DNA of 64,000 nt, from IMG/VR virus record IMGVR_UViG_3300042879_006196, positions 1 to 64,000 of that record; one strand, given 5' to 3'. The translations under genes were made by a program, and so were the position numbers. Below, in pieces: positions 5,398-33,178 of this stretch. The notes beneath the pieces are model-generated. The model was given only the letters and a program-made list of their open reading frames with translations. It searched no databases and was not told the origin of the DNA. The first letter of the stretch is position 1, and each line of letters starts with the position of its first letter.

Positions 5398-5400
5398 AAG

Positions 5401-5625: not shown

Positions 5626-6111
5626 ATGGCTATAATATCACTAGCGAAGGCTTTAAAAATAAAAAATCGAATCACAAGTAAAATTACATCTATCAAAAAA
5701 GAAATTTCTGCACATAATGCTTACTTGGTTGACAAAGATATTCCTGTTGATGAAATTAAACTACAAGTTGATGTAAATAATTCAATTAAAGAATTGGAAA
5801 AACTCACAGCATTTCTTGTAAAGGTCAAAGCAGAAATCAATAAAAGTAATTCGGATTCTGCTGATCTAATTTTTGAGCTTTCTGAGACTAAAGGATTGAT
5901 TGCTTTTTACGAAAACTTAGATTGTTCACAAAATTTATCGTCTTATTATAGACCACAATCTAACGATATAAAAAGGGTTCAAATTGATGTAATTCAACAA
6001 AACTTAATTGTAAAAACTTTAATCAAAAAGTCTGAAAAATTACAAGATCAGTTGGATGAATTCAATGCAGTTAAAAAAGTAGTTATTGATGATGAAATTT
6101 TAGAGCTGTAA
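5626..6111 (+). CDS. Coiled-coil protein resembling the DIP1984 family
   Basis: SLAKALK.KNR...I..., K.EIN.SN, C-terminal L...LD.FNA; recognised from memory. Confidence 0.5.
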   Translation: MAIISLAKALKIKNRITSKITSIKKEISAHNAYLVDKDIPVDEIKLQVDVNNSIKELEKLTAFLVKVKAEINKSNSDSADLIFELSETKGLIAFYENLDCSQNLSSYYRPQSNDIKRVQIDVIQQNLIVKTLIKKSEKLQDQLDEFNAVKKVVIDDEILEL

Positions 6112-8360: not shown

Positions 8361-9869
8361 ATGAATAATTTTATTAAAACACCATTCGAAATTACGGACG
8401 CATACAAGCTTTCTCACTGGAGACAATATCCAGAAGGAACCACTGGTGTGTACTCCAACTTTACACCTAGAAAATCACGAAGACCAGGAATTGACAAGTT
8501 TGTTTTCTTTGGAATGCAAGCTTTTTTACAAGAACTTAATGAGCAATTTGACAAAAATTTCTTTTCATTAACAACAGAAGAAGCTGTTCAAAGATTTGAT
8601 GCTTTTTACATTGGATTCTTCGGATTATCAAATCCACACAGCAATGAACAAGTTGGTAAACTTCACCAACTAGGCTATTTGCCGATTAGGATAAAAGCTT
8701 TACCTGAAGGCTCTGTGGTTAATCATAACATTCCTGTGGCAACTATGCAATCTACACACGAAGATTTCTTTTGGTTTACACAATGGATCGAAACTTGGAT
8801 GTCAGATTCAATTTGGAAACCATCCACTTCGGCAACCACTTCTTTTTATTATCGAAAAATATTCAATTTTTACAATAAACTTACATCCGATAATGATTGG
8901 TTTGTAGATTGGCAAGGACATGATTTTTCTATGAGAGGCATGTCAAATGTGCTTGACGCATGTGCTTCTGGAGCAGGACATTTGCTCAGCTTCAAAGGTA
9001 CAGACACTTGCCCTTCACTTTCATGGATTAATGAATATTATCCTGGTGAAAATGGTTTGCTTGGAAGTTCTGTCCCAGCTACAGAACACTCTGTACAAAC
9101 TGCATTTTTGCCTGAAGTAAGTAACGATACAGATGTTTGTGACGAACAGTACACGGCTCATACTCTTGAGCTTTATCCAGAAGGGATTGTATCTCAAGTA
9201 AGTGATGGATATGATTTTTGGCGATTCGTAACTGTCATTTTGCCTAAGTTCAAGGAACAAATCATGTCTAGAGATGGTAAATTTGTCATCAGACCTGATT
9301 CTTCTCCTAAAACTCCTGTTGAGGTTATCATCGGTGACTCAGAGGCTCCAGAAGGCACACCTGAAAACAAAGGATTAATTGAATGTCTGTATGAAATTTT
9401 TGGTGGTACTTTCAATTCAAAAGGCTATAAAGTATTGGATTCGCATATCGGTGCAATTTATGGTGATTCTATCACGCTGGAATACGCTGAAGCTATTCTT
9501 TCTGGTCTTGAAAAGAAAGGATATTCTTCTGACAATATTGTGCTCGGCATAGGGTCATTCACTTATCAATATGTTACAAGAGACACTCATGGCATAGCAA
9601 TTAAAGCCACTGCTGTTTCTTCTGGTCGCGGAGAAGATCAAAAGTGGAGAGCTACTTACAAAGACCCCAAAACAGACAACTCAGGTAAGAAATCAGCTAA
9701 AGGTTTCTTAAGAGTGGATATGTTTGATGGAGATTATGTTCTTTCACAAAATGTCACACAAGAAGAAGAAGGCGGCGCATTGGAACTTGTCTACGAAAAT
9801 AGCAAGATTCTCAGATCGGAATCCTTCGCAGAAGTTCGACAAACACTCTCTGGGTTTTTACCCAACTAA
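8361..9869 (+). CDS. nadV: Nicotinamide phosphoribosyltransferase-like protein (NadV/Namat)
   Basis: TDAYKLSH..QYP, HDF..RG, VPATEHSV, V.D.YD, VIRPDS, IYGDSIT, KDPKTD...KKSAKG. Confidence 0.95.
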   Translation: MNNFIKTPFEITDAYKLSHWRQYPEGTTGVYSNFTPRKSRRPGIDKFVFFGMQAFLQELNEQFDKNFFSLTTEEAVQRFDAFYIGFFGLSNPHSNEQVGKLHQLGYLPIRIKALPEGSVVNHNIPVATMQSTHEDFFWFTQWIETWMSDSIWKPSTSATTSFYYRKIFNFYNKLTSDNDWFVDWQGHDFSMRGMSNVLDACASGAGHLLSFKGTDTCPSLSWINEYYPGENGLLGSSVPATEHSVQTAFLPEVSNDTDVCDEQYTAHTLELYPEGIVSQVSDGYDFWRFVTVILPKFKEQIMSRDGKFVIRPDSSPKTPVEVIIGDSEAPEGTPENKGLIECLYEIFGGTFNSKGYKVLDSHIGAIYGDSITLEYAEAILSGLEKKGYSSDNIVLGIGSFTYQYVTRDTHGIAIKATAVSSGRGEDQKWRATYKDPKTDNSGKKSAKGFLRVDMFDGDYVLSQNVTQEEEGGALELVYENSKILRSESFAEVRQTLSGFLPN

Positions 9870-9913
9870 TTGACATCGGGCGAGAAATCGCCCGATTCTA
9901 CCAATACTATATT

Positions 9914-10732
9914 ATGAAAGCAAACGATCCAAACATACTATCACTGATGCAAATCAAAGACCAACATGGAACTATCATCCCTTGGGAATACAATCTCTTT
10001 CCAGATGGTCAAGTGCAATTTAAAATCAAAAAGAGTTATTTAGAAAATCAAGGACTGAGTTTAGAAGTAAAAGCATCCTTGTGTAATCCAACTATTTTAG
10101 ATTTATTTAATCAACTAAAATTCACTTTACCCTTTTGCTCGTTTAATATAAATTACTACTATGGAGCCAGATGTGATAAAAGTTCAACAGACGAATATAT
10201 TGTTTGCAATGTTGCACAACAACATGCCTCCACTGAGTATAGTACATCGTTTTTAGCACCACATTGTAACAAATTGCTTGAAAGTGATATGTACAAATAT
10301 TACATTCCAGATTGCATCAATTTAAATGATTATCATTTAATTGTCTGCCCTGATGAATCAGCTTTTGAAAGATACGAAGAATTCATTGAAAATCACAATT
10401 GTATGATCTGTGAGAAAGAAAGAGATCAAGATACAGGTAGAATTATTTCACACAAAATTCCAAATTTCTCGCCAAATTTCAGAAAAGTGTTAGTAATTGA
10501 TGATCTTTGTGATGGAGGTAATACCTTTATGTCTGTTGCAGATAGTATGCCTTCAGAAACAGAAAAACATCTATTCATTTTTCATGGTGTATTTAGTAAT
10601 AATGCTTTGGAAAAATTAACAGAAAAATTTGACAAGATATTCGTTTCTAATTCTTTACCAAATTACAAAGAACAAATGGCTAGAATTCCAAATTTTGAAG
10701 ATAAAGTGGTGGTTTTCGATGTCTGGAATTGA
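9914..10732 (+). CDS. Ribose-phosphate pyrophosphokinase-like protein (Adps-like)
   Basis: FPDGQV, AR.DK, PH, PD..A..R, VIDDLCDGGNTF PRPP-binding motif, HG.F. Confidence 0.88.
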   Translation: MKANDPNILSLMQIKDQHGTIIPWEYNLFPDGQVQFKIKKSYLENQGLSLEVKASLCNPTILDLFNQLKFTLPFCSFNINYYYGARCDKSSTDEYIVCNVAQQHASTEYSTSFLAPHCNKLLESDMYKYYIPDCINLNDYHLIVCPDESAFERYEEFIENHNCMICEKERDQDTGRIISHKIPNFSPNFRKVLVIDDLCDGGNTFMSVADSMPSETEKHLFIFHGVFSNNALEKLTEKFDKIFVSNSLPNYKEQMARIPNFEDKVVVFDVWN

Positions 10733-14042: not shown

Positions 14043-14111
14043 ATCACACAATCTTAATTCAATAATTTGCCCGATTTTTTCCAGATTTAACACAATCTGA
14101 TTATAATAAAA

Positions 14112-14477
14112 ATGACATTTTTTGAAAACTTAATGATAGCACATTTTATTGGAGATTGGATTCTCCAACCTTCATCAATGGGAATACAAAAATCTTCCAA
14201 TTGGAAAATTAGATTTTTGCATTGCTTAATTTACACCGCTTGTTTTTTCTGGCTTAACTGGATTGCCTGTTTGTGGATTTTTATAACCCATTTTATCATT
14301 GACTCGTATATGCCTCTATTTTGGTTTAGAAAATTAAGAGGTGATTTTAAAACCATTGAAGAATTTAAAACTTCTTTTAACACACCTGCTGGCTTTTTTA
14401 TAAATGTTGTACTTGATCAAATTTTTCACATTATCACATTTTTGCCTGTAATTTTGTCCGTAAATTACAATAAATAA
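14112..14477 (+). CDS. DUF3307-like membrane protein
   Basis: AHFIGDW.LQ, LHC.IY, THFIID, DQ.FH motifs. Confidence 0.8.
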   Translation: MTFFENLMIAHFIGDWILQPSSMGIQKSSNWKIRFLHCLIYTACFFWLNWIACLWIFITHFIIDSYMPLFWFRKLRGDFKTIEEFKTSFNTPAGFFINVVLDQIFHIITFLPVILSVNYNK

Positions 14478-14478
14478 A

Positions 14479-17400
14479 ATGATTAATACAGATTGTGTGA
14501 AAATATATGAGGAAGAATATCAGGTGAGCAAGCAGGTGAGCCATCAGCAGGTGATGGATCGGGTGATGACTCTAGTGTGGTATCAGATTCGCCACGAGGT
14601 AGAGGATCAGGTATTAAGTGAGGTGTGGCTTAAGGTGTGGTATGATTAATACAGATTGTGTGGAAGTAAAAAAACAGGCACATAATCAGCTAAGGAATCA
14701 GGTGTTGAATCACGTGCGGTATCAGGTGTTGAATCACGTGCGGTATCAGGTGCTGAATCAGGTGTGGTATCTGGGGAGGGATCAGGTGTGGGTTAAGGTG
14801 TTTAGATGATTAATACAGATTGTGTGGAGATAAAAGATTGGGGTCATATAGAGGATCACGTGGAATATCAAACTTCGATTCAGGTATCAAATGAGGTGTG
14901 GAAGCAGGTGTATCTTCATCTGAGGAATCGAATGAAGAAAGAGATGTATTTCTACTTAAGGTGGGAGGTGTGGTTTAAGGTGTGGTTTGATTAATACAGA
15001 TTGTGTGGAGATAAAAGATTGGGGTCATATATTGGATCATGTGGAATATCAAATTTCGACTCAGGTGTCAAGTGAGGTGTGGAAGCAGGTGTATTCGCAG
15101 GTGAGAAATCAAACGATGGATGAAATGTATTTCTACGAGAGAAAACAGGTGTGGCTTAAGGTGTGGTTTGATTAATACAGATTGTGTGGAGATGTATGAG
15201 ATTAAAGATCAGGTGTGGGATAAGGTGGAGTATGAGGTTTCGATTCAAGTGAGGGATCAGGTGTGGGGTTATTTGTATTCCCTCATAAGGTACGAGGTGA
15301 GGCTTAAGGTGTGGTTTGATTAATACAGATTGTGTGGAGATAAAAGCGATTAGATATCAGGAGAGAAAACAGGTATGTGATCAGGTGAGAAATCAGGTGG
15401 GGAATGAGGTGAGGAATGAGGTGTGGCATCAGGTAGAGTATCAGGTGTGGGCAAAGGTGTGGTGGTCAGGTGAGGGGAATCACTTGAGTGATCGGATTTT
15501 CAAATGATTAATACAGATTGTTTAAAGGTGAAGGTTGAAGATCAGGTGCAGAATCAGGTGTATAATCTCCTAAGGATTCATGTGAAGCTCCAGTTGGACT
15601 ATCAGGTGTGGGATCGTTTGTTTTGGGAAATGCGGTGGAAGGTGTTCAAATGATTAATACAGATTGTGTGGAGATATTTGAGATTGAAAGTAAGGCGTAT
15701 GATCAGGTTATGGAACTGGTCTATTATCAGGTTTGGGAACAGGGGTGGTCGAGGGTAAGAGTGTATATGTGTCGTGAGGTGTTCAGATGATTAATACAGA
15801 TTGTGTGGAGATATTTAACATTAAAGATCGAGTGGGGGAGCAGGTGATATTTGAGGTGAGGATTAAGGTGGTGGATAAGGTGTTGTGGAAGGTGTATGAT
15901 TGGGCGAGGGATCAGGTAAAGGGTAAGGTAAGAGTGAAGGTGTTCAGATGATTAATACAGATTGTGTGGAAGTGAAGAATCAGGTGAAGAATCAAATGAG
16001 GAATCATGTACAGTATCATGTGCAGACTCAGGTGTATGAAAAGGTAGATTATCAGGTGTGGGATAAGGTGTGGTATCTAATGAGGAATAAGGTGATAAAT
16101 GATTGATATAGATTGTGTGGAGATATTTGAGATTAGAGATCGGGTGAAAAATCAGGTGGTGGATAAGGTGTTGTGGAAGGTGTGGTATCTGGCGAGGAAT
16201 CAGGTGAGGGGTCAGGTGTATCTAAAGGTGTGGGATAAGGTGTGTGATCAAGTTGTGTGTCAGGTGTGGCTTAAGGTGCTCAAATGATTAATACAGATTG
16301 TATGGTAGTGAAGAATCAGGTGAAGAATCAGGTGTTGGATCAGGTGAGTTATCAGGTGTGGGATCAGGTGCTGTATCAGATGTGGCATCAGGTGTATCAT
16401 CACGTGAGGGATCAGGTGTGGTATCAAGTGGAGGATCAGGTGTATGATAAGGTGTGGCATCCTGTGAAATATCGGGTAAAGGGTCAGGTGTTCGATGATT
16501 AATACAGATTGTTTGAAGGTGAAACATCAATTTAAGAAAGTGGAATCTCAGGTGTGGGATCAGGTGATAGATGATTAATACAGATTGTGTTGGAGTAAAT
16601 CATAAAGTATTTTTTGAGAATGTGTCCTTTGAATTGTGGCATCAGACGAGGAATAATCTAAGGTGGCAGGTGAGGAACCAGGTGTGGTTTAAGGTGTATC
16701 TTCAGGTATGGCATAAGGTGTTCAGATGATTAATACAGATTGTGTGGAGATATTTGAGAATCGAAATCAGGTGATAACTCAGTTGAGTGATCAGGTGAGT
16801 TCGAATCTGGTGCATAGTCAGGTGTGGTTTAAGGTGTTCAGATGATTAATACAGATTGTGTGGAGATATTTGAGAATCTAAATCGGGTAGAGGGTAAGGT
16901 GAGGCATCAGGCAAGAGATCAGGTGAGTAATCATGTGTGGTATAAGTTGCGGGATAAGGTGTGGTGGGAGATGTGGTGCTACGTAAGAGTGAAGGCGTGG
17001 AGGAAAATGTTCGAATGATTAATACAGATTGTGTGGAGATGTATGATAATATTGAGTTATGGTGGAAGGTGACAGATAAAGTGTATGCTGTGGCGAGGAG
17101 TCAGGTGCAGAATCAGGTATTGTTTCATACAAAGACTCATCCTAAGGTGAAACTGAAGGTGAAAGATCAGGTATATTATGAGGTGCTCAGATGATTAATA
17201 CAGATTGTGTGGAGATATTTGAGATTGAAGATCAGGGTTGGGATCAGGTGAGTGATCAGGTGAGTGATCAGGTGGAGTATCAGGTGTGGGAGCAGGTGTG
17301 GTGGAAGGTGTGGGATCAGGTGTGGTATCAGGTGTGGTATCAGGTGTGGTATCTGGCGTGGGATAAGGCGTGGGATGAGGTGATAAATGATTAATACAGA

Positions 17401-18082
17401 TTGTGTGGAGATGTATGAGATTGAAAATCAGGTGTGGGATCAGGTGAGTGATCAGGTGGAGCATCAAGTGTGGTATCAAGTGGAGCATCCTTTGTATGCT
17501 CAGGCGAGGGATCAAGTGATGAACCAGGTGTGGCTCAAGGTGTTCAGATGATTAATACAGATTGTGTTGAGATATTTGAGATTGAAGATCAGGCGTTGGA
17601 TCAGGTGAGTGATCAGGTGGAGTGGGAGGTGTGGCATCATGTGGAATATAAGGTGTGGTATAATGTGAGTAATCAGGTGAAAAACCCAGTGTGGTTTAAG
17701 GTGTTCGTATGATTAATACAGATTGTGTGGATGTGAAGGTTGAGGATCAGATTTGGCGTCAGGTGAGTTATCAGGTGGAGTGGGATACGCGGCATCATGT
17801 GGAGGTGTGGTATAATGTGAGTAAGCAGGTGAAAAACCCAGTGTGGTTTAAGGTGTTCGTATGATTAATACAGATTGTGTGGGTGTGAAGGTTGAGGATC
17901 AGATTTGGTGTCAAGTGGAAAATCAGGTGGAGTGTCAGTTGTCGTACTGGGTATGTGATGAGGTGAGATTTGATGCGGTTGATACAGTTTGGCATGAAGT
18001 GGGGTATAAGTTGTATGATCACATGGTTTTTCCAGGTTTAACATTACCCGATTATACTGGATATGATTCAAAAAAAAGATGA
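14479..18082 (+). repeat. MINTDCV micro-ORF array, block 1 (22 units by manual count)
   Basis: Repeat (A/T)TGATTAATACAGATTGTGTG at 14479, 14642, 14806, 14987, 15168, 15316, 15504, 15650, 15787, 15948, 16099, 16284, 16495, 16571, 16726, 16842, 17015, 17191, 17387, 17548, 17709, 17861; each opens a QVW-rich ORF that ends in the next repeat, except the last (17861), which runs on into the rIIA promoter. Confidence 0.95.
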
Positions 18083-20204
18083 CTTTGTAATCGACATGAA
18101 TTCCTCATTTGCACAACGAAAGTTCTCAGTTAAAACTGAGAATCTTGCTCATTTGTTCGACATAATGAGAAATTACATTTACTCAAACAAAATTCTTGCA
18201 GTTATTAGAGAGTACTCTACAAATGCAATTGATGCAAACATAAAAAATAACTTTGCATCTAGACCAATTTCAATCACATTGCCTACGTACTTCGAACCTA
18301 CATTTTCTGTAAGAGACTATGGCGCAGGTTTGAGCGAAGAAGAAATTTTTGAAATTTATTCTAGTTATGGAGAATCCACTAAAAGAGAAAGCAATGAATA
18401 CATTGGTAATCTTGGTATTGGAAGCAAATCTGGCTTCGCTTATTCTGATTCATTTACCATTACTTCATTCCATAATGGAACAAAAAAAATCTATGAAGCT
18501 TTCATTGATGAATCACAAATTGGTACAATTGCAAAAATTCATGAAGAAAAAAATGACAGTGAAAGCGGATTGTTAATATCTATTTCTGTTAATAAAAATG
18601 ACATCAATTATTTCAAAATTGAAGCAGAAAAGTTTTTCATGTGGTGGGATGTTACACCTGAATTTATTGGTGTCCAACCTGATTTTATGTCTCAATTTTC
18701 AACATACAAAAATGAATATTCTTCTAGTATTTGTCAAATCTTTTCAAAAAGATATTCTGAAACTTCAATTTCAGTTAAAATGGGTAATATTCTTTATCCA
18801 GTTACAAATTTTGATAAAATTGATTGTGATTGGTTGAAAGGTTTGTCTGTTGTCATTAAAGTAGGGCTTGGAGAAGTAAGTCACTCCGCTTCAAGAGAAT
18901 CTCTTGAAATGAATAGTTTAACTGTAGATACAATTAATACATATCTTCAAAAAATAAGAGAGACACTTACAGCACATTTCCTGAAGCAAATTGATGATTG
19001 CAAAACACCTTGGGGCGCAATCATAGAATATCATAATATGTCTTTTTTCGCTCAACAAACGATTGGTAAAAAAATATCTTGGAAAGGTAAAACTCTATCA
19101 ACGCAGTTACCGTCTAGTTTTCAATATTGTTTCTTTGATACATACTACAAAAAATGGAAGAAAAATGTAACTGTTCGATACTCCGCTGGAGACAGTGTGG
19201 CTTTTATTTTGAATGATGGAGGTTTTCCAGCGTCACAAACTAGAGCAAGGCTTCTAGCCGCACGTGATAAACTCAACAAGACAAACCTTTACACAAGTAT
19301 CATTTACATAAAAGGTTCAATCTCAGACACAAATGATTTACTAAAAAGTGACGAATTGATTGGATCAAATTATGTCAAGCTTTCAACGGTATTAGCAATT
19401 CCTACTAAAAATAAAAGTAAAAAAGCTGTTGCTGGAAAGATTCTTGAATGGAATTCCACAACAACATTTCCATACTCTACTTGCTGGGACTCTGTAGATA
19501 TACCAGACAGTGATGAAGAAATGATTTATGTTGAGATTGAAAAATTTGTGCCTGTCATGAGCAATTTTAATAACAGTAGCCGAGCGAGGTTTTATGATCT
19601 TAAAAATTGTTTGAATTTGATTCGTGATGTGGATAATAAAGTTTTCAAAATTTACGGAGTAAAAGCTGGTCAAAAATTACCTAAAAATTTTATTAGTCTG
19701 CATGATTACATGGAAAGGATGATTGTAAAATTCATTAAAACAGACGATTTTGTTGATAGTTATGTTCAACATGCAATTAGTCAAGTTAATTTAAGAACAT
19801 CATTCTTGAGTAGTGCAAGAACTCTAATGCAAACATTTGATACTGATATAATGAACAAATTCAATGATGTAAAATGCGAAAAGCTCAAGGCAATGTTTTA
19901 CTTTACTAAGCCTATGATGAATAAATTTTATCATCTTTTGACGAACATAAAAAACATTTCATTTCATTTTCCTAAAATAACCACTGCCTTGTCAGAGTTG
20001 GATGATTTGAAAGACAAAAGATTACAAGTTTGGAATCAAAACAAAAATTATTGTTTGGAAAATTATCCAATGATTGAATTTCATTATTCTCCAAACACTA
20101 TGGCTTTGACAAAAATGTTTGAATATGTAAATTCAATTCACGCAACACAAAACACTGAGAGGCACAAAAAGCCAATCAAAATTTCATCAAAAATTAATGT
20201 TTGA
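18063..20204 (+). CDS. rIIA: rIIA-like protein (N-terminal GHKL ATPase)
   Basis: Y.NK..AVIRE...NA.DA, F.VRDYG.GLS, YG.STKR.SN..IG.LG.GSKS.FAYSDSF, S.SRESL. Confidence 0.9.
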   Translation: MIQKKDDFVIDMNSSFAQRKFSVKTENLAHLFDIMRNYIYSNKILAVIREYSTNAIDANIKNNFASRPISITLPTYFEPTFSVRDYGAGLSEEEIFEIYSSYGESTKRESNEYIGNLGIGSKSGFAYSDSFTITSFHNGTKKIYEAFIDESQIGTIAKIHEEKNDSESGLLISISVNKNDINYFKIEAEKFFMWWDVTPEFIGVQPDFMSQFSTYKNEYSSSICQIFSKRYSETSISVKMGNILYPVTNFDKIDCDWLKGLSVVIKVGLGEVSHSASRESLEMNSLTVDTINTYLQKIRETLTAHFLKQIDDCKTPWGAIIEYHNMSFFAQQTIGKKISWKGKTLSTQLPSSFQYCFFDTYYKKWKKNVTVRYSAGDSVAFILNDGGFPASQTRARLLAARDKLNKTNLYTSIIYIKGSISDTNDLLKSDELIGSNYVKLSTVLAIPTKNKSKKAVAGKILEWNSTTTFPYSTCWDSVDIPDSDEEMIYVEIEKFVPVMSNFNNSSRARFYDLKNCLNLIRDVDNKVFKIYGVKAGQKLPKNFISLHDYMERMIVKFIKTDDFVDSYVQHAISQVNLRTSFLSSARTLMQTFDTDIMNKFNDVKCEKLKAMFYFTKPMMNKFYHLLTNIKNISFHFPKITTALSELDDLKDKRLQVWNQNKNYCLENYPMIEFHYSPNTMALTKMFEYVNSIHATQNTERHKKPIKISSKINV

Positions 20205-20474
20205 ATGACTTAGTTACCAACATGCAGAAAATTTAATCATGAAGTTTTTCAATAAATTCTTCTCACTGATTCAGATTGTGTGCATGTTGGTAATTTTGCC
20301 TTTTGCATTCTTTTACTTAACTATTTTAGATTTTTTGGATTACCAAAAATCAAAAAAAATGTAACTATTCTTGAATAGTTATCGTAAATAAAATTGTATT
20401 ATAGATTGAATCTTTTATAGAATTAGTGTGTAATACATTTTTTCCAGGTTTAACAAAACAGGATTATAATTAAC

Positions 20475-21569
20475 ATGGTTGAACAATTAACACAAGAACA
20501 AATAGACAGTTTTCCACGATTCAGAGATAAGTGGACAAACATCGGACGATCCACTGGCAGAGCTGACCTTTCAGTTGTAAAGCCAATTATCAACAAAATT
20601 TATGAGCAGAAAGATCTTGAAGCTCCAAAGTACTTCTTCCATTTTGGCAATCCGATGGATATGCTCAATGGACGAGTGATTTGCAGAATGCTCAACAGTT
20701 TTGATCCAAAAAATTATCAGAAAGATACAATCAATCTTGATAATGACTTCATGCGTATCTTTGATATGACCTATCAAATGTATTCTGAACAATTCGATTT
20801 GAAATCTGCACATGGTGTGGATTGGAGCGAAGACATCAAGCTTGGAATGCTTTCACATTGCCAAAATCTTTTGAAGTCTAAAAACATGCTTGCATACAGA
20901 AAAGAACTGGAAACTGATGTTCTTTATGGCAACCATGAAGCACACAATCTGGCTTACTACGAATTCTGGGACGAATGGTTCAAATTTGACTTCTTAAAGC
21001 CAATGCATGCATTTTTTGAACTCGCTAACCATCTTGGATGGTGGTGTGCTGAAAAAGAAGTGGCATATTTGTCAGACAAACCTGATGAAGTGCACGTGGA
21101 TGAACTAGGTAGACTTCACAACACCGCAGGACCAGCTGTCAAATACAGAGATGAATTCTCAATCTACTGCATCGAAAGCCATAGCGTTCCTGCCCACGTG
21201 GTAGAGGCACCAGACACAATTACAGTTGAAGAAATTGATTCTCAAACAAACGCTGAAGTTAGAAGAATTTTTATGACACAATTTGGATTCGAAAGATATT
21301 TCCAAGAAGCAAATTGTCAAATTATTGACCAGGATTTTACTGTTGTTGATTATAACAAACAAGAATCTATGCCAAGAATGCTCGTAAAAACTAAATTTGA
21401 TGATGTGTATTTGATCGGAACTGATGGCTCCACAAATCGTGTTTACTACATGCCAATTGGTAATGTAACCACAATCAAAGAAAGATTGGGTGTGAACATC
21501 AAAACCTGTAAGCAAGCACATGAAATCATTTCAGGTGTGAAAGAATCAAATATCATTTCGCAAAGCTAA
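20475..21569 (+). CDS. DUF6745-like protein
   Basis: N-terminal LT.EQ....R.KW..IG.ST..AD; C-terminal LH...GPA..Y.D.......VP..VV..P..IT...I....NAEVRR..M...G.ERY; recognised from memory. Confidence 0.75.
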   Translation: MVEQLTQEQIDSFPRFRDKWTNIGRSTGRADLSVVKPIINKIYEQKDLEAPKYFFHFGNPMDMLNGRVICRMLNSFDPKNYQKDTINLDNDFMRIFDMTYQMYSEQFDLKSAHGVDWSEDIKLGMLSHCQNLLKSKNMLAYRKELETDVLYGNHEAHNLAYYEFWDEWFKFDFLKPMHAFFELANHLGWWCAEKEVAYLSDKPDEVHVDELGRLHNTAGPAVKYRDEFSIYCIESHSVPAHVVEAPDTITVEEIDSQTNAEVRRIFMTQFGFERYFQEANCQIIDQDFTVVDYNKQESMPRMLVKTKFDDVYLIGTDGSTNRVYYMPIGNVTTIKERLGVNIKTCKQAHEIISGVKESNIISQS

Positions 21570-21599
21570 TATGTATAATAAATAACAAGGATAAAAAAA

Positions 21600-22037
21600 A
21601 TGACAAAAACCATTAAAAAAACCAAAGCTCAGAATAACCTTTCTGAAATTCAACAATTCGCCACTAAATCTAGCAACGATTGTCGCATCATTGACAAAAT
21701 TGAAGTGGGGCAGTGCGTGAGACAAGGGGATGTTTACATCACCCGAATCGAAAACTTCTCGAAAGTGGGATGCACTAAAGCAGGGCAAAAACTTGCTCCT
21801 GGTGACACCCCTGGCTCAAGACATTTTGTAGATGCACACGTTACTACTTGGCAAAATGAAAACACTGGAAAAGTTGTGCGAAATGAAGTGGGATTCACAT
21901 GTAAAGGATTGCTCCTTGAATGCGATAGAAGCTTCAAGGTCACACACCCTGAACATGCCCATTTCTATCTCCCTGCTGGCTCTTATGAAGTGAGCTATCA
22001 AGTTAACACCAAAGAAATGGCTAGAGTACTTGATTAA
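21600..22037 (+). CDS. Conserved small partner of DUF6745-type genes
   Basis: RQGDV, LA.G...G.RH, .THPEH....LP.G.YEV..Q, terminal RV.D. Confidence 0.7.
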   Translation: MTKTIKKTKAQNNLSEIQQFATKSSNDCRIIDKIEVGQCVRQGDVYITRIENFSKVGCTKAGQKLAPGDTPGSRHFVDAHVTTWQNENTGKVVRNEVGFTCKGLLLECDRSFKVTHPEHAHFYLPAGSYEVSYQVNTKEMARVLD

Positions 22038-22078
22038 AATCTAAAAACAACACACTCACATCTTTTCCAAAAACACCG

Positions 22079-22113
22079 AAGAGGACAATTCAAATATTGT
22101 CCTCTTTATTTTT
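22079..22113 (+). terminator. Intrinsic terminator closing the DUF6745 operon
   Basis: AAGAGGACAAT...ATTGTCCTCTT followed by a T-run. Confidence 0.8.
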
Positions 22114-22164
22114 CAATTTTTGCCCGATTTTTTCCAGATTTAACAATTATTATTTATATTAAAA

Positions 22165-25100
22165 ATGATCAACACAGATTGTGCGGAAGTAAATGAAAAA
22201 GTGAATCCTATACAGCATCATGCAATTAATCAAGTACAGTATGAATTGGAGATTGAAGTTTGGGATATGGTAAAATGTAAGGTATCAGGTGAGGTAAGTT
22301 GTCAGGTGTTCGATTGATTAATACAGATTGTGTGAAAGTGGAACATCCAGTGTGGACTCAAGTGCGAGATCAGCTGTTCTCTCAGGTGCAGTGGAAGGTG
22401 TGCCATAACGTGCTGACTCAGGTGGAGTGGAAGATGCATGATCAGGTGTGGTGGAAGGTGTTCGATTGATTAATACAGATTGTGTTAAGGTGTGGGAGAA
22501 AAAGGATAAGGTGAGGGGTCAGGTGTGTTATCAAGTGATGGGTCAGGTAGAAGATCAGGTGCATGGTCCTTTGTTTCGGGAAATGTGGTGGCAGGTGTGG
22601 TTTGAGGTTTTCAAATGATAAATACAGATTGTGTGAAGGTGAGGGAGAAAAAGATTCAGGAGTGCGATCAGGTGTATGAGCAGGTGTATGAGCAGGTGTA
22701 TTGTCAGGTGAGTAATCATGTGGAGTATCAGGTGTGGGAGCAGGTGTGGTGCAAGGTATGTAAAAAAGTGTGGTTTAAGGTCTATAATGATTAATACAGA
22801 TTGTGTGGAGGTGAGGGAGAAAAAGAATCAGGCGACTGAGCAGGTGTATGAGCAGGTGTGTGAGCAGGTGGGGTGGAATGTGGAGTATCAGGTGTGGGAG
22901 CAGGTAGAAGATCAGGTGTGGGATCGTTTGTTTTGGTACTCGCGCTTTGAGGTGTTCAAATGATTAATACAGATTGTGTGGTGAAGAAGCAGGTGTGGGA
23001 GTATGTAGAAAGTCAGGTGTTGTGGAAGGTGTATGATTGGGTGAGTGAGCAGGTGAATTGGCAAGTGGAGATTCAGTTGTGGGATAAGCTGTTTGCTCAG
23101 GAAAGACATCAGGTACGGCATCAGGTAAAAGTGAAGGTGTTCAAATGATTAATACAGATTGTGTGGAAGTTGAAAGCCATGTGAAGAATCAGGGGTTTGA
23201 TCAGGTGTGGAATCAGGTGGAACTTCAGGTGTGGGGTCAGGTGTGGGATTATTTGTGGTGGAAGGTGTGGCTTGAGGTGTTCGAATGATTAATACAGATT
23301 GTGTGTATGATTGGGTGAGTGGTGATTGGGTGAGTGATCAGGTGGAGCTTCATGTGAGGAATCAAGTGCGGGGTCAGGTGTGGGGTCAGGTGTGGGATAA
23401 GGTGCGGGATCAGGTGGAGTATCAGGTGTGGGAGCAGGTGTGGTTTGAGGTGCTCAGATGATTAATACAGATTGTGTGGAAGATCAGGTGGAGTATCAGG
23501 TGGAGTATCAGGTGGAGCTTCAGAAGTGGGGTCAGGTGTGGGATGAGGTGTGGTGGAAGGTGTGGCTTGAGGTAAGTGATCAAGTAAGGGATCAGGTGTT
23601 TTATAAGGTGTGGTTTGAGGTGTTCTATGATTAATACAGATTATGTGGTAAATAAGCAGGTGTGGTGGCATGCAGAAGATCAGGTGTTTTCGAATATGCG
23701 TGATTGGGTGTGGTGGCATGTAGAAGATCAGGTGTATGATCAGGTAAGGATATTGGTGCAGATTCATGTGTGGGATCAGGTGGGGGGTCAGGTGTATGAC
23801 CAGGTGTTCTATGATTAATACAGATTGTGTGAAGGTAAAGAAGCAGGTGTGGGAGCATGTAGAAAATCAGGTGTGGTTTGAGGTGTATGATTGGGTGAGT
23901 GAGCAGGTGAATTGGCAAGTGGAGATTCAGTTGTGGGATGAGGTGTTGTATCAGGTGTTGTGGATTAAGGTGTTTAGATGATTAATACAGATTGTGTGAA
24001 GATAAAAAATCAAATGTATGATCAGGTGGAGTGGAAGGTGTATGATCAGGAGTGGTGGTATCGGGTGAGCATTCTAGTGTTGGATCAGTTGGAGTATAAG
24101 GTGTGTAATCAGGTGTGGTGGGAGGTGTATAAGGGTGTGTGGCAGGTGTTAAAATGATTAATACAGATTGTGTGGAAGATCAGGTGTGGGATCAGGTGGA
24201 GCTTCAGGTGTGTAATCATGTGTGGTATCATGTGAGGTATCAGGCGTCTCAGCAGTTGGGGGTTAAGGTGAGAGGTCAGGTGAAATACAAGGTGAGGTAT
24301 CATGTGAGAGATCAAGTGGTGTGTGAGGTGTGGTATGATTAATACAGATTGTGTCAAGGTGAGGGAGCAAGATAAGGTGTGGGATCAGGTGTGGTGGAAG
24401 GTGCTCAAATGATTAAAACAGATATTGTGAAAGTGAAACGTGAAAATCAAATGTGTTTTAAGATTTATCACAATTTGGAACAACAAGTGCACTGGAATAT
24501 ACTTTATCTGGTGAAAGCTCAAACGAAAAATAGACTTTTTGCACAGAAGAATCTGCTGGGTAGGATTGTAGATCGCGAGATCAAAAGGCGCTCAAATGAT
24601 TAATACAGATTGTGTGGTTGTGTGGAATCAGGTGAGACATCAGGTACGGCATCAGGTAAAAGTGAAGGTGTTCAAATGATTAATACAGATTGTGTGGAGG
24701 TATGTGAGATTAATCATGTATGGACTCAGGTGAATTATAAGGTGACACATCAGGTGAAGAGAGTGGCATCTCAGGTTCACTCTGAGGTGAGACATCAGGT
24801 ACGGCATCAGGTGTGGTGTGAGGTAGAGGATCAGGTGGAGTGGAATGTGTGGAATAAGGTGCTGGGTCAGGTGTGGAATCAGGTGAGGATTCAGGTGTGG
24901 TATGATTAATACAGATTGTGTGGAAGATCAGGTGTGGGATCAGGTGGAGCTTCAGGTGTGTAATCAGGTGAGGTATCAGGTGAGGTATCAGGTGAGGGTT
25001 CAGGTGTGTGATAAGGTGAGGGGGAGGTGGTGCTACGTAAGAGTGAAGGTGTTGTTTAAGGTGTTCAGATGATTAATACAGATTGTGTGGAAGATCAGGT

Positions 25101-27430
25101 GTGGGATCAGGTGGAGCTTCAGGTGTGTAATCAGGCGAGGTATCAGGTGAGGTATCAGGTGAGGGAGGAGGTGTCTGATAAGGTGAGGGGTCAGGTGAGA
25201 TATAAGGTGAGGCATCATGTGAGAGATCAGGTGGTGTGTGAGGTGTTCTATGATTAATACAGATTGTGTAAAGGTGAGGGAGCAAGATAAGGTGTGGAAT
25301 CAGGTGCAGGATCATGTGTGGTTTGAGTTGTGGTATAAGGTGCGGGATCAGGTGAAGATTGAGGTGAGGTTTCAGGTGTGGGTTCAGGTGTTCAAATGAT
25401 AAATACAGATTGTGTGGAAGTGGAAGATGATTCAAATTTGACTAAAATGAAACATGTGTTGACTCATGTGCGCGATAGGGTGGAGGTTAGGGTGTGGTTT
25501 GCGGTGTCGGCTCTTGTGGAATGTCGGTATTGGTATGAAGTAAGAGATAATGTGTTCTAATGATTAATACAGATTGTGTGGAAGTGAAACATCCAGTGTG
25601 GGGTGAGGTGAGGGAACAGGCAAGGGTTACAATAGTTTATCATTTGTGGCATCAGGTGTGGTACCAGGTTGCGTGGGATGTAGAGGATCAGGTGTTGGAT
25701 CAGGTGTGGAATCAGGTGTTCTAATGATTAATACAGATTGTGTGGTAGCGAAGAATCTGGTGCGGAATCAAATGAGGAATCATGTACAGTATCAGGTGCA
25801 GACTCAGGTGTATGAAAAGGTAGATTATCAGGTGTGGGATAAGGTGCGATGGAAGGTGTATGCTCAGGTGCGGGATAAGGTGTTTAGATGATTAATACAG
25901 ATTGTGTGGAAGTGAGGGAGCGGGATCAGGCGTGGAAAAAAGTGCAGAATCATGTGTGGAATCAGGTGCAGGATCATGTGTGGTTTGAGTTGTGGTATAA
26001 GGTGCGGGATCAGGTGAAGATTGAGGTGTGGAATAGGGTGTGGTGGAAGGTGTTCAAATGATAAATACAGATTGTGTGAAAGATCAGGTGTGGAATCAGG
26101 TGTGGAATAAGGTGTTGAATCAGGCGTGGGGTCAGGTGGAGTATCAGGTGGAGATTCAGGTGTGGGATCAGGTATGGATTCAGGTATGGAAGGTGTGTTG
26201 TAAAATACAGAATCAGGTGTGGCATGATTAATACAGATTGTGTGGATGTATGTGATAATAATTATCAGTTTTGGTATGTAGTGTCTCAGGTTCAGGTTGA
26301 GGCAAATCAGGTGGAGATTCAGGTGTTTAGACAAGTGAGGAAACTAACGTGGGCTCAGGTAAGATATCAGGTGACACACAAGGTAATTGATCAGGTGTGG
26401 TATGATTAATACAGATTGTGTGAAAGATCAGGTGTGGAATAAGGCGCTGGATCAGAAGTGGGGTCAGGTGAGGAAACAGGTGTGTGAGCATGTATGGGAT
26501 CAGGTGTGGAATAAGGTGTGGGATCGTTTGTTTTGGGTAAGATTCAAGGTGAAGTATCAGGTGTGGCATGATTAATACAGATTGTGTGAAAGTGAGTGAG
26601 TGTGATAAGGTGCAGGATCAGGTGAGACAGCAGATGCGGGATCAGGTGAAAGATCAGGCGTTGAAGGGGTTTATTCAGGTATATTGGCAGGTGAGTAATC
26701 AGGTGGAGTATAAGGTGTGGGAGAAGGTGATCAAACAGGTACGACTTCAGGTGTGGTATGATTAATACAGATTGTGTGAAAGAGCAGGTGTGGAATAAGG
26801 TGCTGGGTCAGGTGAGATACAAGGTGAGGTATCAGGTAGAGGATAAGGTGGAGTGGAAGGTGTTAAATCAGGTATATGATAAGGTGTTTAAATTGAATTA
26901 TAAGGTGTTGAAAAAGGTGTTCAGATGATTAATACAGATTGTATAGAGATATTTGAGATTGAAGATCAGGCGTTGGATCAGGTGAGTGATCAGGTGGAGA
27001 TGGAGGTGAGGTATCAGGTGAGATATAAGGTGAGGCATCATGTGAGAGATCAGGTGTGGTGTGAGGTGTTCTATGATTAATACAGATTGTATAGAGATAT
27101 TTGAGATTGAAGATCAGGCGTTGGATCAGGTGAGTGATCAGGTGGAGATGGAGGTGTGGCATCATGTGTTGGATCAAGTTGTGGGTGAGGTGTGGTATCA
27201 GGTGTGGTATCAGGTGAATTATCAGGTGTGGTATGATTAATACAGATTGTGTGAAAGTGAAACGTGAAGATCAATTGTGTTTTAAGATTTATTATAATTT
27301 CGATCATAAAATGCACTGGGAGATGATGTATCAAGCGCATTACAAACCCCAATATCAAGCAGAATATTATTTATGCTGTAATATTTACAATAAAGGATGG
27401 AAGCAGATAACAGAGCAGATATTCAAATGA
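22165..27430 (+). repeat. MINTDCV micro-ORF array, block 2 (32 units by manual count)
   Basis: Repeats from 22165 to 27233 at about 75-230 bp spacing; first ATG lies directly behind the promoter at about 22126-22160. Confidence 0.95.
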
Positions 27431-27968
27431 TGAATCACTTCAAAGATTCCTTTTTTATGAAACATCCCACTGGACTCCGCGACAAAAAATGATCCCTCTT
27501 TAATGCAGAATAAAACACCTTTTCATCACCCTTTTTGTACCCCACACCTGACCAAAAACAAGGCTTCACACACACTAATTTATATGCCTTTCTGTTCATT
27601 TTTTACTCTATGAATTCCTATATGAACACACAATCTGAAACACGATCTCTATATCCCTAATACAATTAAGATACAATTAAAAAATCACATATTCATTATG
27701 CATTTTTTTCACCTTCCACCACCTCAAATGATAAAAAAAAAATTACACAAGATATATATGATTTTTTTCAATTTTTTCTACTCTATGAAAAATTAATGAG
27801 ATTTTTTGTCAAATCATTTTTCATCTCTGAAAAAATCATATCATTTTCTCTTTCTATTTTTTTCTGATTTTCGCCCGATTTTTCCTCATCAATTTTGCCC
27901 GATTTTTTCCAGTTTTAACATTTTCTTTTTATAATGTTTCCAAGACAAATTTCGTAGAATGTAGTGGT

Positions 27969-30900
27969 ATGATTAATATACATAATGTAGAATTGAATGA
28001 CAAGGATTACATAAAAATAAAAGATTTCATTTCTTCCCATGTAAATGAAAATGTCTGGTTTCGTGTGAATGATCAAGTGAGGAAATATTTCTGCCATAAA
28101 CACAGAGGTAAAATTTATAAGAGGATGTTCAAATGATTAATATAGATTGTGTGAAGGTATTTGATATGAAACAGGTGTGGGATGAGCTGACTTTTCAAGT
28201 GAGTGATCCAGTGGATAAGCATGTGCTGTCTGACGTGTGGTATCAAGTGAGGGATAAGGTGTGGATTCAGGTACGATTTAAGGTGTGGATTAGGGTGTTG
28301 TTATGGTTAATACAGATTGTGTGAAGGTGAGGGTGCTGAATCAGGTGAGTGATCAGGTGCGGGATCAAGTGAACTATCCAGAGGCAAATCATGTGCTGTC
28401 TGACGTGTGGCATCAAGTGAGGGATCAGGTGTGGATTCAGGTACGATTTAAGGTGTGGATTAGGGTGTTATGGTTAATACAGATTGTGTGAAGGTATTTA
28501 ACCTAATACAAGCGTGGGATGAACTAACAACTTATCAGGTAAGGTATTCAGTGAAATATCATGTGCTGCATAATCTCTGGTATGAAGTGGGGGCTGGGGT
28601 GAAGATTGAGGTGAGGCATAAGGTGTGGTTTGATTAATACAGATTGTTTGAAGTAAAAGTGATTAGATATCAGGTAAGTGATAAGTTGTGGGAGTTGGTG
28701 ATCAGACAGGTATGGAATCAGGTGAGGTATAATGGTCGGTGGCATCAGGTAGAGGGGAGGGTGCGGGATCGGTTGTTCAAATGATTAATACAGATTGTGT
28801 GGAAGTGAATTATAGGGGGTGGATTCAGGTACGATTTAAGGTGTGGTTTGAGGTGAGAGATCGGGTGTGGCTTGAGGTAAGTGAACATCCAGTGTGGAGT
28901 CAAATTTTTTTCCATCAGGTGTTTGAAAAGGTGGAGTGCGAAGTGTGGTATGATTAATATAGATTATGTGAGGGTGAGGAATCAGGTGGGTGAGCAGGTG
29001 AGCTGTCAGGTGTGGAATCAGGTGTTTGAGCATTTAGAAGATCAGGTAGAGTATCAAGTGTATAATCAGATTTTGTCTGAGTTGCATGATCAGTTGTATT
29101 ATAAGGACTGGGAGGTGTGTTATAAAATACGGCAAAAGGTGTGGTATGATTAATACAGATTGTGTGAAAGTGGAGAATCATGGTTGTTGGCAGTTTAGGG
29201 ATCAGGTGTGGTATCAAGTGGAGCAACAGGTGTGGCACAAGGTGTCTAATGGGGTTCGGGATAGGGTGTGGATTAAGGTGTTCAGATGATTAATACAGAT
29301 TGTGTGAAGGTATTTGAACTAAATCAATTGTGGAATCAAGTGAGTGATCAGGTGGAGTGGAAGGTGCGTGATGAGGTAGAGTATAAGGTGTGGCTTCAGG
29401 TAAGATACAAGGTGTGGGATCAGGTGCAGTTTTGGGTAAGATTCAAGGTGAAGTATCAGGTGTGGCATGATTAATACAGATTGTGTGGAAGTGAAACATC
29501 CAGTGTGGACTCAGGTGCAGAATCAGGTATATTGGCAGGTGAGTAAACAGGCATGTCATAAGGTGGAGTGGAAGGTGTGGCATAAGGTGTGTAGTGGGGT
29601 GCGGGAATGGGTTGTGTATCAGGTGTGGGATCGGGTTGTGTATCTAACGTTAAATGATTAATACAGATTGCGTGAAGGTATGTGAGATTAATCATGTATG
29701 GACTCAGGTGAATTATAAGGTGACACATCAGGTGAAAAGAGTGGCATCTCAGGTTCGCTTTGAGGTGATGAGTCAGGTGTGGGATCAGGTGTATTGGATG
29801 ATGTGGCAAAAGGTGGTGTGGTATGATTAATACAGATTGTGTGGAAGTGGAACATAAAGTGTTGGAGACGATGTGGTATCATATGTGGGAAAAGGTGTGC
29901 TATGGGCTGATATTTCAGGTATGTAGTGAAGTGAGGCTTAAAGTGAGGCTTAAGGTTTTTGTTTGAGGTGTGGTATGATTAATACAGATTGTGTGGAGAT
30001 GGTGCGTCCAGTGTGGACTCAGGTTCGAAATCAACTGTTTACTCAGGTGCAGAATCAGGTAGATCATAAGGTGAGGGCTCAGGTGTTCTTGAACGTGTGG
30101 TCTAAGGTGTGGGATCAGGGGTGGTATCAGGCGTGGGATAAGGTGATAAATGATTAATACAGATTTTGTGGAAGTGAAAAATCAAATGTGGGGTGAGGTG
30201 AGGGATCATGCGTGGTTGAAGGTGTGGTATCTGGCGAGGAATCAGGTGAGGAACCAGGTAAATGATCAGGTAAGTGGTGAGGTGATTAGTCTGCTTGTGT
30301 ATCAGGTGTGGCATCAGGTGTTGTATCAGTTGACTGATATGGTTTGGAATAAGGTGATAAATGATTAATACAGATTGTGTGGAAGTGAAAAATCATCCAC
30401 ATATGCAGGTAAGACAGCAGATGAGACACAGGGCGTGGTTTCAGGTGTGGAATCAGTTGGTTCCTATGGTTTGTGATCATGTGTGGAAGCACATGTATAT
30501 TCAGGTGCAAATTCAAGTGTTGGATAAAGTGATGTATGGATTGTATGAAGAAGGTGAACAATCAGGTGTGGCATGATTAATACAGATTATGTGGGCTTAC
30601 TCGGAGCGGCAAAAACTCAGGCTCAAAATGAAATTAACAGTATTGTGCAACTTGAAGTGTGGGAGAAGGTGATCAGTCAGGCATGGCTTAACACGTGGCA
30701 AAAGGTGTGGTATGATTAATACAGATTGTGTGAAAGTGGGGAATCCAGTGGGGAATCAGTTGGGGTTTGAGGTGAATTTTCAGGCGAGGTGGCAAGTGAT
30801 GTCTCATGTGGAATATGTGGTGCGGCATGATGTGAGGGATCAGCTGGAGTGCAAAGTTTGGTATATGTGGTGGAAGGTGTGCAAATGATTAATACAGATT

Positions 30901-33178
30901 GTGTGAAAGTGGAAAATCAAGTGTTTAATGAGGTGCAGAATCAGGTGTGGTGGAAGGTACATGCTCAGGTGTTCCGTAAGCTGAGAGGTAAGGAATGGTT
31001 GGCTGAGTTGTGGCAACAGAAAACATATGTTGTCACGTATCAGAATCAGGTTCTACTTAAAGTAAAACTTCAGGTGTGGTATGATTAATACAGATTGTGT
31101 GGAATTGTATAATGAGGTTTCGAATCAAGTGAGGGATCAGGCGTGGGCTCATGGACTTCAGGCGTGGTGGCAAGTGAGGAATAAGATAAGGTATCAGCCT
31201 TGGCATCAAATTAGTAGGAAGGTGAGAAAACAGGTATGGTATGAGGTGTGGTATGATTAATACAGATTGTGTGAAAGTGTATAATGAGGTGCAGAATCAA
31301 GTGAGGGATCATGTGTGGATTAATACAGATTGTGTTAATACAGATTATGTTGAATTGTATTATGAGGTTTCGATTCAAGTGAGGGATCAGGTGTGGTATC
31401 AGGCGTGGGATAAGGTTTGGGATCAAGTGAGGAATAAGATGAAGTATCAGGCTTGGCATCAAATTAGTAGGAAGGTTAGAAAACAGGTATGGTTTGAGGT
31501 GTAGTATGATTAATACAGATTTTGTGAAAGTGGAAATTTGGGTGTGGGATCAGCTAAAGAATCATGTGAAAAATGAATTTAGTAGTGAAGTGTGGCAACA
31601 GGTAAATGTTAGGATGTGCGATCAGGTGTGGGAGAAGGTGATCAGACAGGTACGATATAAGGTGTGGTATGATTAATACAGATTGTGTGAAGATATATAA
31701 TAGTAAAAATCCAATGATTGATCATATGTGGGATCTAGTGACAACCCAATCGTTTTATGAGTTTTTGAATTATGTGCTTTTCAAGGTAAAGAGACAGATA
31801 TGGAATAAGGTGTGGCTTGAGGTGTTCAAATGATTAATACAGATTGTGTGGAATTGAGCCATCACGCGCTGGATCAAGTGAGCAACAATACGCGGTATCA
31901 GCTGGAGTGGAAGGTATGGGCTCATGTGGATCATGCGGTAAAACAGATTGGTTTGCCGTTTAAGGTAAAGTTGCAGGTATGGAATAAGGTGATAAATGAT
32001 TAATACAGATTGTGTAAGGAATAAGATGAAGCAGAAGCACTTGGATTTTAGACATCAAACGCAAAAGTATGTATGGGCTAACTTTATATTAGGGCTTGAG
32101 TATCGTGTGAGACTTAATGTCTGTAGTAAGCTTACGAGTCAGATATATTATCAGGTGAGTGTATATATTTATAATAAGGTGTATGATGATTAATACAGAT
32201 TGTGTGCAGATAAATGATGATGAATATCAGGTAAAAAGTCAGAAGTATAAACATATATCTAATGAGATGTATCTTGAGGTGTGGTATGAGATGTCTCAAA
32301 AAGTATTATATTTTTCTGTGCGTGAGTTGTGCATTAAGGTGTTTAGATGATTAAAATAGATTGTGTGGAGATTAAGGTTCAACATCACATTTGTCTTGTG
32401 CACATTCATGTTTCTAATCAGGCTTATCAGGTGTGGGACAAGAATTGTAAAGGAGTGTGTTTTCCAAGGCGTCAGTTGTGGTTTGAGGTGTTTAGATGAT
32501 TAAAACAAATTGTGTGGAGATTAAGGTTCAAGATCAGATTTGGTTTGTGGATCATTATTTGTCCAATGAAATGTGGTGTCAGGCTTTGAACAATACAGTG
32601 CTTTGGGCAATTCCTAATGTGGTAATTTATAATGTGCGCGATAAAGCTTGGATCAAGGTGTTTAGATGATTAACACAGATTGTGTGAGAGTGGACAGTCT
32701 TGAAATAAAGCATGAAGTTGTTTTTGAGATGAGGAATAAAGTGTGGAATCAAATATATTATCATGTGTCTTGTAAGGTTTGGAGGCTGGTAAAGCTTCAG
32801 GTGTTTGGGTGTTCAGATGATTAATACAGATCGTGTGGATTTGAAAAATCATGATAATCTACATTATCATCTTACTAATTCACCAAGATGGTATGTGTGG
32901 GATCAAATTAATCTTCAAGTGAGGAATCATGTTTCTAAGGTAAGGTTTAAGTTGTGGGATGAGATGTTAAAATGATTAATACAGACTGTGTGAATATAAG
33001 GAATGGTGAAAAAATCCAAATGGATTTGCAGAACCATGTGGATATAGTTGATATCCATTCTGTTCGAAATTCTATTTATTATCAAGTAAGAAGATTAAGT
33101 AATGTAACTTTGATAAGATATAAATTACAAAAGATTTTTTTTGATTATTTGTCTTATGATTTATGTGGGATATTGTGA
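27969..33178 (+). repeat. MINTDCV micro-ORF array, block 3 (30 units by manual count)
   Basis: Repeats from 27969 to 32972; promoter at about 27903-27935; first and last units are the most diverged. Confidence 0.95.

Follow-up and report, generated by a model that had tools for sequence, protein, structure and literature searches.

The DUF6745 family and the systems that resemble it

DUF6745 (Pfam PF20530) is a catalogued domain of unknown function. The family is large, 6275 cluster representatives at 50% identity being matched at E≤1e-3, and it is found in lytic phages and in prophages of many bacterial phyla, always in early regions. Our literature searches for the family, for the RQGDV motif, for repeat strings and for phage small-gene arrays found nothing relevant, and no paper in the library searched mentions DUF6745. 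Here, we studied a DUF6745 gene in a window of 64,000 nucleotides, corresponding to the beginning of the 347,392-bp viral contig IMGVR_UViG_3300042879_006196. The protein matches the Pfam model at 98.7 bits against a cut-off of 27 (E 3.6e-28, residues 148-293). The N-terminal head (LT.EQ .. KW..IG.ST) and the YG.H(D/E)A .. Y.F motif lie on either side of a variable middle, and the gene is paired with the same small partner as its relatives. It however lacks the period-4 repeat insert, not part of the Pfam model, that 24 of 32 viral relatives carry, and has a predicted 77-residue helical subdomain at that position. The same kind of repeat is instead encoded by about 84 tiny neighbouring genes.

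Other systems share some of these traits. In fused and split borosin or burpitide systems, a short repeated core peptide is either embedded in the modifying protein or encoded separately next to it. Neither of our two proteins shows a sequence or fold relation to those enzymes, the DUF6745 insert is internal rather than terminal, no modification is known, and the setting is a phage early region. In prochlorosin-type libraries, one processing enzyme serves dozens of small precursor genes having a conserved leader and a variable body. There, the leader is about 60 residues long, as compared to about 7 here, whereas the present bodies are simple period-4 repeats, the genes are strictly tandem and translationally coupled, and no lanthipeptide synthetase is present. 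Pentapeptide-repeat proteins (A-[D/N]-L-x-x) also consist of short tandem units with a central aliphatic residue preceded by a polar one, and also vary in copy number. The period is however 4 here, and neither the micro-proteins nor the inserts matched a Pfam family at E≤0.1. Finally, the lambda O gene carries origin iterons between the regions encoding its N-terminal and C-terminal domains. In the present case, the peptide pattern is conserved across different codons, copy numbers reach 150 tetrads and the free units are maintained as ORFs.

The DUF6745 gene, its partner and the micro-gene arrays

The window is an early-gene region read on the + strand. It holds DNA ligase, NAMPT, PRPP synthase, a Mom-like protein, rIIB, rIIA and an anti-restriction homologue. 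No match was found by Megablast of positions 18000-22200 against GenBank phages, and tblastn found only two weak DUF6745 hits. The features under study are the following.

14077..14093 (+), copy of the phage-wide promoter-like motif in front of the operon that holds array block 1 (TTTCCA-18-TATAAT)
14112..14477 (+), 121-aa membrane protein (DUF3307, phrog_2470), first gene of the array-1 operon
14479..18082 (+), array block 1, 22 micro-genes of 27-73 aa with leader MINTDCV, a period-4 x-Q/K-V-x body and start/stop overlaps of 4 or 8 nt
18063..20204 (+), rIIA homologue (phrog_612, E 1.6e-103), context and not part of the module
20440..20470 (+), promoter-like motif plus TATAAT, ending 5 nt before the DUF6745 start codon
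20475..21569 (+), DUF6745 protein, repeat-less ('split') form, with head at residues 1-57, predicted helical subdomain at 60-146 where relatives have the repeat insert, and core from YGNHEA (residue 151) onward
21600..22037 (+), conserved partner, a small protein predicted to be mostly beta strands, with a possible metal site
22078..22107 (+), intrinsic-terminator-like hairpin closing the DUF6745-partner operon
22130..22146 (+), promoter-like motif in front of array block 2
22165..27430 (+), array block 2a, 32 micro-genes
27905..27921 (+), promoter-like motif in front of array block 2b
27969..33178 (+), array block 2b, about 30 micro-genes, more degenerate towards the 3' end

An earlier note, made from the sequence alone, had described a DUF6745-like gene without repeats in its middle, accompanied by an RQGDV/THPEH partner, with its own promoter and terminator and lying between two array blocks. 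All the main points of this observation were confirmed. One correction is needed, since rIIA and a 41-aa ORF also lie between array block 1 and the DUF6745 gene.

The pair has directly upstream the motif TTTTCCAGGTTTAACAA at 20440-20456, with TATAAT at 20465-20470. The 17-nt motif, TTTTCCAGRTTTAACA, occurs 62 times, always on the + strand, against 0.18 expected, and it precedes most genes. Therefore, it is not special to the DUF6745 gene. Downstream, the hairpin has a 12-bp stem and a T run. The two genes therefore look like a bicistronic unit of their own.

The DUF6745 protein (364 aa) shows a best period-4 score of 3 of 20, as compared to 14-19 of 20 in all but one of the fused relatives (the exception, locus L034, scores 10; loci recovered in our searches are numbered with the prefix L). 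AlphaFold2 gave a confident model (pLDDT 95.6) in which residues 60-146 form a helical subdomain. In the window's own clade, the middle of the protein is thus predicted to be folded rather than a bare gap.

The partner (145 aa, phrog_27831) has RQGDV at residues 41-45 and THPEH at 115-119. In 31 homologues, the invariant residues are R29, RQGDV, G68, G72-S-R-H75, H116-P-E-H119, Q134 and the C-terminal Asp. A shorter form has QGD, GE.TGH.H and H.EH. A profile built from the 31 homologues located the partner directly upstream or downstream of DUF6745 in most loci having sequence on both sides, in phages as well as in bacteria of many phyla. The bacterial copies lie in prophage early regions, with neighbours including a YqaJ recombinase, an HNH nuclease, an integrase, C5 methylases, P63C, AAA_24 and Gp157. 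One such pair corresponds to genes 37-38 of a mycobacterial prophage. The predicted partner model is mostly beta strands with an N-terminal helix (pLDDT 87). It had no Foldseek match in the PDB at E<0.001 and no Pfam match, and the conserved His and Glu are only suggestive of a metal site, such as that of a cupin-type metalloprotein.

Searches for a function with both proteins gave nothing. Profile searches against PDB sequences returned no hit, Foldseek of the DUF6745 model against the PDB gave nothing at E<0.001, and Foldseek against BFVD returned only other DUF6745 proteins, among them the homologue of Microcystis phage LMM01. PADLOC gave no match to a known or candidate defence protein for DUF6745, the long or short partners, or a fused relative.

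Each micro-gene starts with the nearly invariant 21 nt ATGATTAATACAGATTGTGTG, encoding MINTDCV, runs for a median of 57 codons and stops 1, 4 or 8 nt inside the next start. Such an overlap is found in 71 of the 82 units of at least 20 aa. The junction carries stop codons in both other frames, so that a unit of any length ends there. The bodies contain 18% Val, 10% Gln and 6.5% Trp, and V-V distances peak sharply at 4, 8, 12 and 16. The other two + frames hold 318 and 425 stops in the same 4090 codons, and composition alone predicts 314 ± 15 in-frame stops. This shows that the units are maintained ORFs and not chance frames. Gene callers and protein databases largely miss these genes. Indeed, a search of 5.8 billion protein clusters with one micro-protein found nothing. 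An exact search for the junction in IMG/VR found only the window's own contig.

We considered whether the arrays could be a by-product of unstable 12-nt repeats. In this view, a repeat insert was excised or copied out by recombination, picked up a start codon and was amplified by unequal crossing-over, the peptides having no role with DUF6745. In favor of this idea, unit numbers differ between near-identical strains (see below), unit 75 holds junction remnants fused in frame, the 21-nt leader is almost invariant at the nucleotide level and synonymous codon use is uniformly skewed. The window arrays strongly favour G-ending codons and avoid C, which points to an added force at the nucleotide level. 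However, frames are kept open from junction to junction in 82 diverged units, leader changes give a dN/dS of about 0.44, the arrays have promoter-like motifs of their own, and the same arrangement, with starts, stops and acidic tails, is kept in many distant lineages. We regard this explanation as unlikely.

Repeat inserts and free repeat genes in other loci

The earlier note had stated that DUF6745 homologues commonly carry a period-4 insert between the head and the YG.H.A region. This statement is right. Many relatives carry a tandem tetrapeptide repeat at exactly this position, the homologue P0009 being one example. In 32 IMG/VR loci recovered with patterns taken only from the core domain, 24 genes carry it. 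One further gene of the 32 is a truncated copy of a fused gene. Among the 164 homologues examined from two sequence searches, only 21 carry the insert, but this list is ranked by likeness to a repeat-less query. The consensus is [D/A/N]-[Q/S]-V-[W/R/G], with rarer xAVx, xNLx, xSLx and xATx types. Inserts range from 7 tetrads to about 150, the longest being in L016.

We then asked whether the split arrangement recurs. In L019, a repeat-less DUF6745 and its partner are followed by seven units of the form MTLSEEQIQPVRNQV-(xxQV)n-VQE. In L015, a repeat-less gene is followed by at least 15 units of the form MK[TI]LGKPV-(xxSV)n-IK with ATGA overlaps, and then by the partner, while three more units lie about 9 kb upstream. 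In L017, L010, L093 and L094, MKSVK/MNSVK-(xxQV)n units lie beside the pair, with six in a row in L093. A scan of metagenomes added many more cases, including Tara Oceans contigs, with units of the forms MMKSVKNQV..QVYDEIS, MKTTKFHV..QVYESN and MKPVNYQV.. on one or both sides of a repeat-less gene and its partner. L107, L112-L134 and L164 are further examples. In L085/L086, a relative of the window phage with 52% identity, MIQTQSQ-(xKVW/xEVR)n units directly follow the partner. Arrays lie between or beside DUF6745 and the partner in L015, L019, L093/L094, L126, L120 and L130. Single-protein scans with the L015 and L019 proteins returned only themselves. The L019 leader MTLSEEQ resembles the DUF6745 head LT.EQ, but the idea that leaders derive from the head was dropped because the other lineages have K-rich leaders.

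In the sample of 32 loci, the four with free repeat genes (L010, L015, L017 and L019) are all repeat-less and no fused locus has any. In the wider sample of 96 viral and metagenomic loci in which head and core are both covered, 27 of 63 repeat-less genes have free repeat genes nearby and 36 show none in the flanks available, whereas 1 of 33 fused genes (L170) has one and 32 show none (Fisher's exact test, p 1.5e-5, without phylogenetic correction). The loci are not independent, and the only four phylogenetically independent contrasts, though all in the same direction, are too few for significance. On a tree of the core domain, the split lineages are nested among fused ones and separated by well-supported branches, which forces at least 4 changes of state. 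The leaders differ between lineages, yet free peptide leaders resemble each other enough to leave open one old origin rather than repeated fission.

Several comparisons indicate that free and fused repeats are of one kind. Both share one register profile, with Val at position 3 in 80-100% of tetrads, Gln, Ser or Lys at position 2, and W and R leading at position 4. An hhalign run placed the window array profile on the insert of fused proteins with 98% probability (E 1.6e-13) and found nothing in the repeat-less alignment, although scores on low-complexity sequences are inflated. The ends correspond, since fused inserts begin [I/L]-[K/R]-x-Q-V and end Q-V-Y-G-x-H-D whereas free peptides begin [V/T]-K-x-Q-V and end Q-V-Y-[D/E]. 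Median sizes are similar, 57 residues for free peptides and 66 for fused inserts.

These data bear on two further explanations. First, the repeats could work as DNA or RNA, for instance as iteron-like binding sites for DUF6745, the micro-ORFs being incidental. Tandem 12-nt repeats indeed lie in the middle of an early gene that sits near replication and recombination genes in prophages, placement inside or beside the gene is what cis-acting sites would show, and the window arrays have a strong strand bias (GC skew 0.54-0.59). However, it is the amino-acid pattern that is conserved across lineages and not the nucleotide sequence, with Gln-Val encoded by CAG-GTG here and by CAA-GTT in L019, Ser-Val in L015, Asn-Leu in L032, and Ala-Val or Ala-Thr types. 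This argues for a protein-level element rather than a DNA site. The reading frame is always the one giving x-polar-V-x, free units have conserved starts and stops and open frames, and 14.6 kb of sites would be extreme. We consider this reading very unlikely. Second, the arrays could be an unrelated expanded family of small early genes that happens to lie next to DUF6745 in a syntenic group of phages, with a convergent low-complexity likeness. Sister phages indeed have homologous MI-type micro-genes with non-repetitive bodies (L005, L103 and most of L081). Against this, the association appears in lineages sharing only 23-30% DUF6745 identity and having different leaders, the array of L015 lies between DUF6745 and its partner, free repeat genes are nearly absent beside fused genes, and the repeat type of the free genes matches the fused inserts (QV in most lineages, SV in L015 and L107). 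Coincidence appears the least likely of the explanations considered.

The arrays turn over quickly. L097, an independently assembled contig from another metagenome, is 97% identical through rIIA, DUF6745 and the partner, but over the same interval it has 19 and 28 units where the window has 22 and 33. In sister phages, the MI-type micro-genes share the ATGATTAA junction but are only weakly periodic or not periodic at all. L081 keeps a V-V signal at lags 4 and 8 (z 4.1 and 5.0), whereas L005 and L103 have no clear repeat, the V-V spacing test, run on L005 only, having found none. The closest abundant relatives (54% identity, L177-L179) have no array within 10 kb on each side. Arrays are therefore common next to repeat-less genes but not obligatory, and the window phage is an extreme expansion.

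Roles inferred for the three parts

The earlier note proposed that the variable module had been exported into about 84 trans-acting genes that pair with, compete with or decoy for one core DUF6745 complex. This interpretation is partly supported. Two checks set beforehand as able to refute it, on whether homologues lack the repeat insert and on whether arrays fail to co-occur with DUF6745 loci, were run and neither refuted it. The analysis establishes the family membership of the gene, its conserved pairing with the partner, the position and type of the insert in relatives, the common nature of free and fused repeats, the recurrent association of free repeat genes with repeat-less DUF6745, the maintenance of reading frames in the arrays and the turnover of units between strains. 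In contrast, any action of the micro-proteins in trans, whether by binding, competition or as decoys, any modification of the peptides, and the direction of the change (export or fusion) are matters of inference only.

In the explanation that we favor, at about even confidence, the gene is the split form of a three-part phage early module made of the DUF6745 core protein, the small partner with its conserved His/Glu cluster, and a tetrapeptide-repeat element of the form [D/N/A]-[Q/S/K]-V-[W/R/G] repeated n times. The element would belong functionally to the pair and could be supplied in cis, as an internal insert, or in trans, as tandem, translationally coupled micro-proteins. Most split lineages have 1 to about 15 copies, as compared to about 84 here. 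The micro-proteins would supply in trans what the insert supplies in cis, most simply by associating with the DUF6745/partner complex where the insert would emerge. One core could therefore be combined with many repeat variants, removing the limit of one variant per protein and giving a library that diversifies by unit gain, unit loss and point change. Because the module sits in early or prophage-early regions and varies so much, it probably acts on a host target during takeover or counter-defence, but this last step is speculation.

Alternatively, the repeat element may be the substrate of the partner, seen as a small metalloenzyme with DUF6745 as scaffold, in a way resembling ribosomal peptide pathways. 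The micro-genes would then be a precursor library. The invariant H75, H116, E118 and H119 of the partner, together with GE.TGH.H plus H.EH in its short form, look like a metal site, the micro-genes have a conserved short leader and a variable body, and both fused-or-split architectures and large precursor libraries exist among borosins, burpitides and prochlorosins. However, neither protein matches a known enzyme family or fold, an insert between two folded domains is unusual for a released peptide, the leader has only about 7 residues, and no protease or export gene stood out beside the module in the few loci whose neighbours were scanned. This reading is possible but doubtful.

We found no description of the partner, of the defined tetrapeptide repeat, of its cis or trans placement or of an 84-gene array. 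On present evidence, the module is real and apparently undescribed, and we would not assign it to any known kind of system, with the caveat that its parts have no established function. These results turn an anonymous domain into a defined three-part system. They also matter for annotation, since the micro-genes are largely missed and assemblies often break inside the repeats. A more far-reaching view, which we hold only tentatively and consider rather unlikely, is that DUF6745, its His/Glu partner and the W/R/G tetrapeptide repeat form a widespread and so far unrecognised three-component phage system, in which a hypervariable repeat module sets the specificity towards a host target and is carried either in cis as one variant per phage or in trans as a fast-evolving library, this jumbo phage being the extreme case. 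If the repeat element sets specificity, the fused and split forms would be a natural example of a single-variant and a library solution to the same problem in phage-host conflict.

Promoter-like motif and gene content of the early region

Over the whole window, a 17-nt motif, TTTTCCAGRTTTAACA, occurs 62 times, all on the + strand, as compared to 0.18 copies expected. Copies are found for instance at positions 1224, 6398, 20440, 22130 and 62131. A TATAAT-like box often follows about 18 nt later and ends only about 5 nt before the ATG. This motif is probably the early promoter of the phage itself, and it may possibly give near-leaderless mRNAs.

The following genes were also identified in the window:
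8361-10732, NAMPT and a PRPP synthase homologue, lying side by side and giving an NAD-salvage pair
11127, a Mom-like modification gene
14112-14477, a DUF3307 membrane protein, the first gene of the array-1 operon, whose stop abuts the first micro-gene
45135, an anti-restriction homologue

In a sister phage (locus L001), the early region is interrupted by TnpB-like (OrfB_IS605) genes and homing-endonuclease-like ORFs (2175-3311 and 15857-17122).

Codon use and unit junctions in the micro-gene arrays

In the two array regions (14479-18082 and 22165-33178), synonymous codons are strongly G-ending and avoid C. CAG reaches 83% as compared to 14% in other genes, GTG 79% as compared to 24% and GAT 98% as compared to 70%, whereas GGC falls to 1% as compared to 19%. 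The GC skew is 0.54-0.59. The arrays of L019 and L093, two other loci with free repeat genes, do not show this bias, showing that it is specific to this phage, though it remains unexplained.

Every unit junction, as for example that at 22612-22635, carries the sequence ATGATTAAT, which holds the next start plus stop codons in both other frames (TGA and TAA). Therefore, units of any length modulo 3 end there. The 21-nt leader is almost invariant at the nucleotide level, with 38 changes in 1476 sites. One 83-aa unit (31253-31504) contains two junction remnants fused in frame (..WINTDCVNTDYV..), which looks like a scar of unequal recombination between units.

Period-4 repeats in other loci and other proteins

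Assemblies often break, or shift frame, inside the 12-nt repeats, as observed in L042 (1628-2854) and at many contig ends (loci L057, L060, L062, L064, L067 and L070-L072). As a result, DUF6745 genes in MAGs are frequently truncated at the insert. A single locus, L170, has both a fused DUF6745 and a free repeat micro-gene, of the xRVx type, located downstream (5457-5669).

Period-4 repeats were also found in other proteins. In L019, the same phage as one carrying a split module, a 366-aa protein (16858-17958) carries a [D/N]-G-E-V period-4 acidic repeat. In a Pseudomonadota MAG (locus L068), a different 237-aa protein (5203-5916) carries [D/A]-A-A-[R/W/G] period-4 repeats. The W/R/G tetrapeptide repeat is therefore not exclusive to DUF6745.
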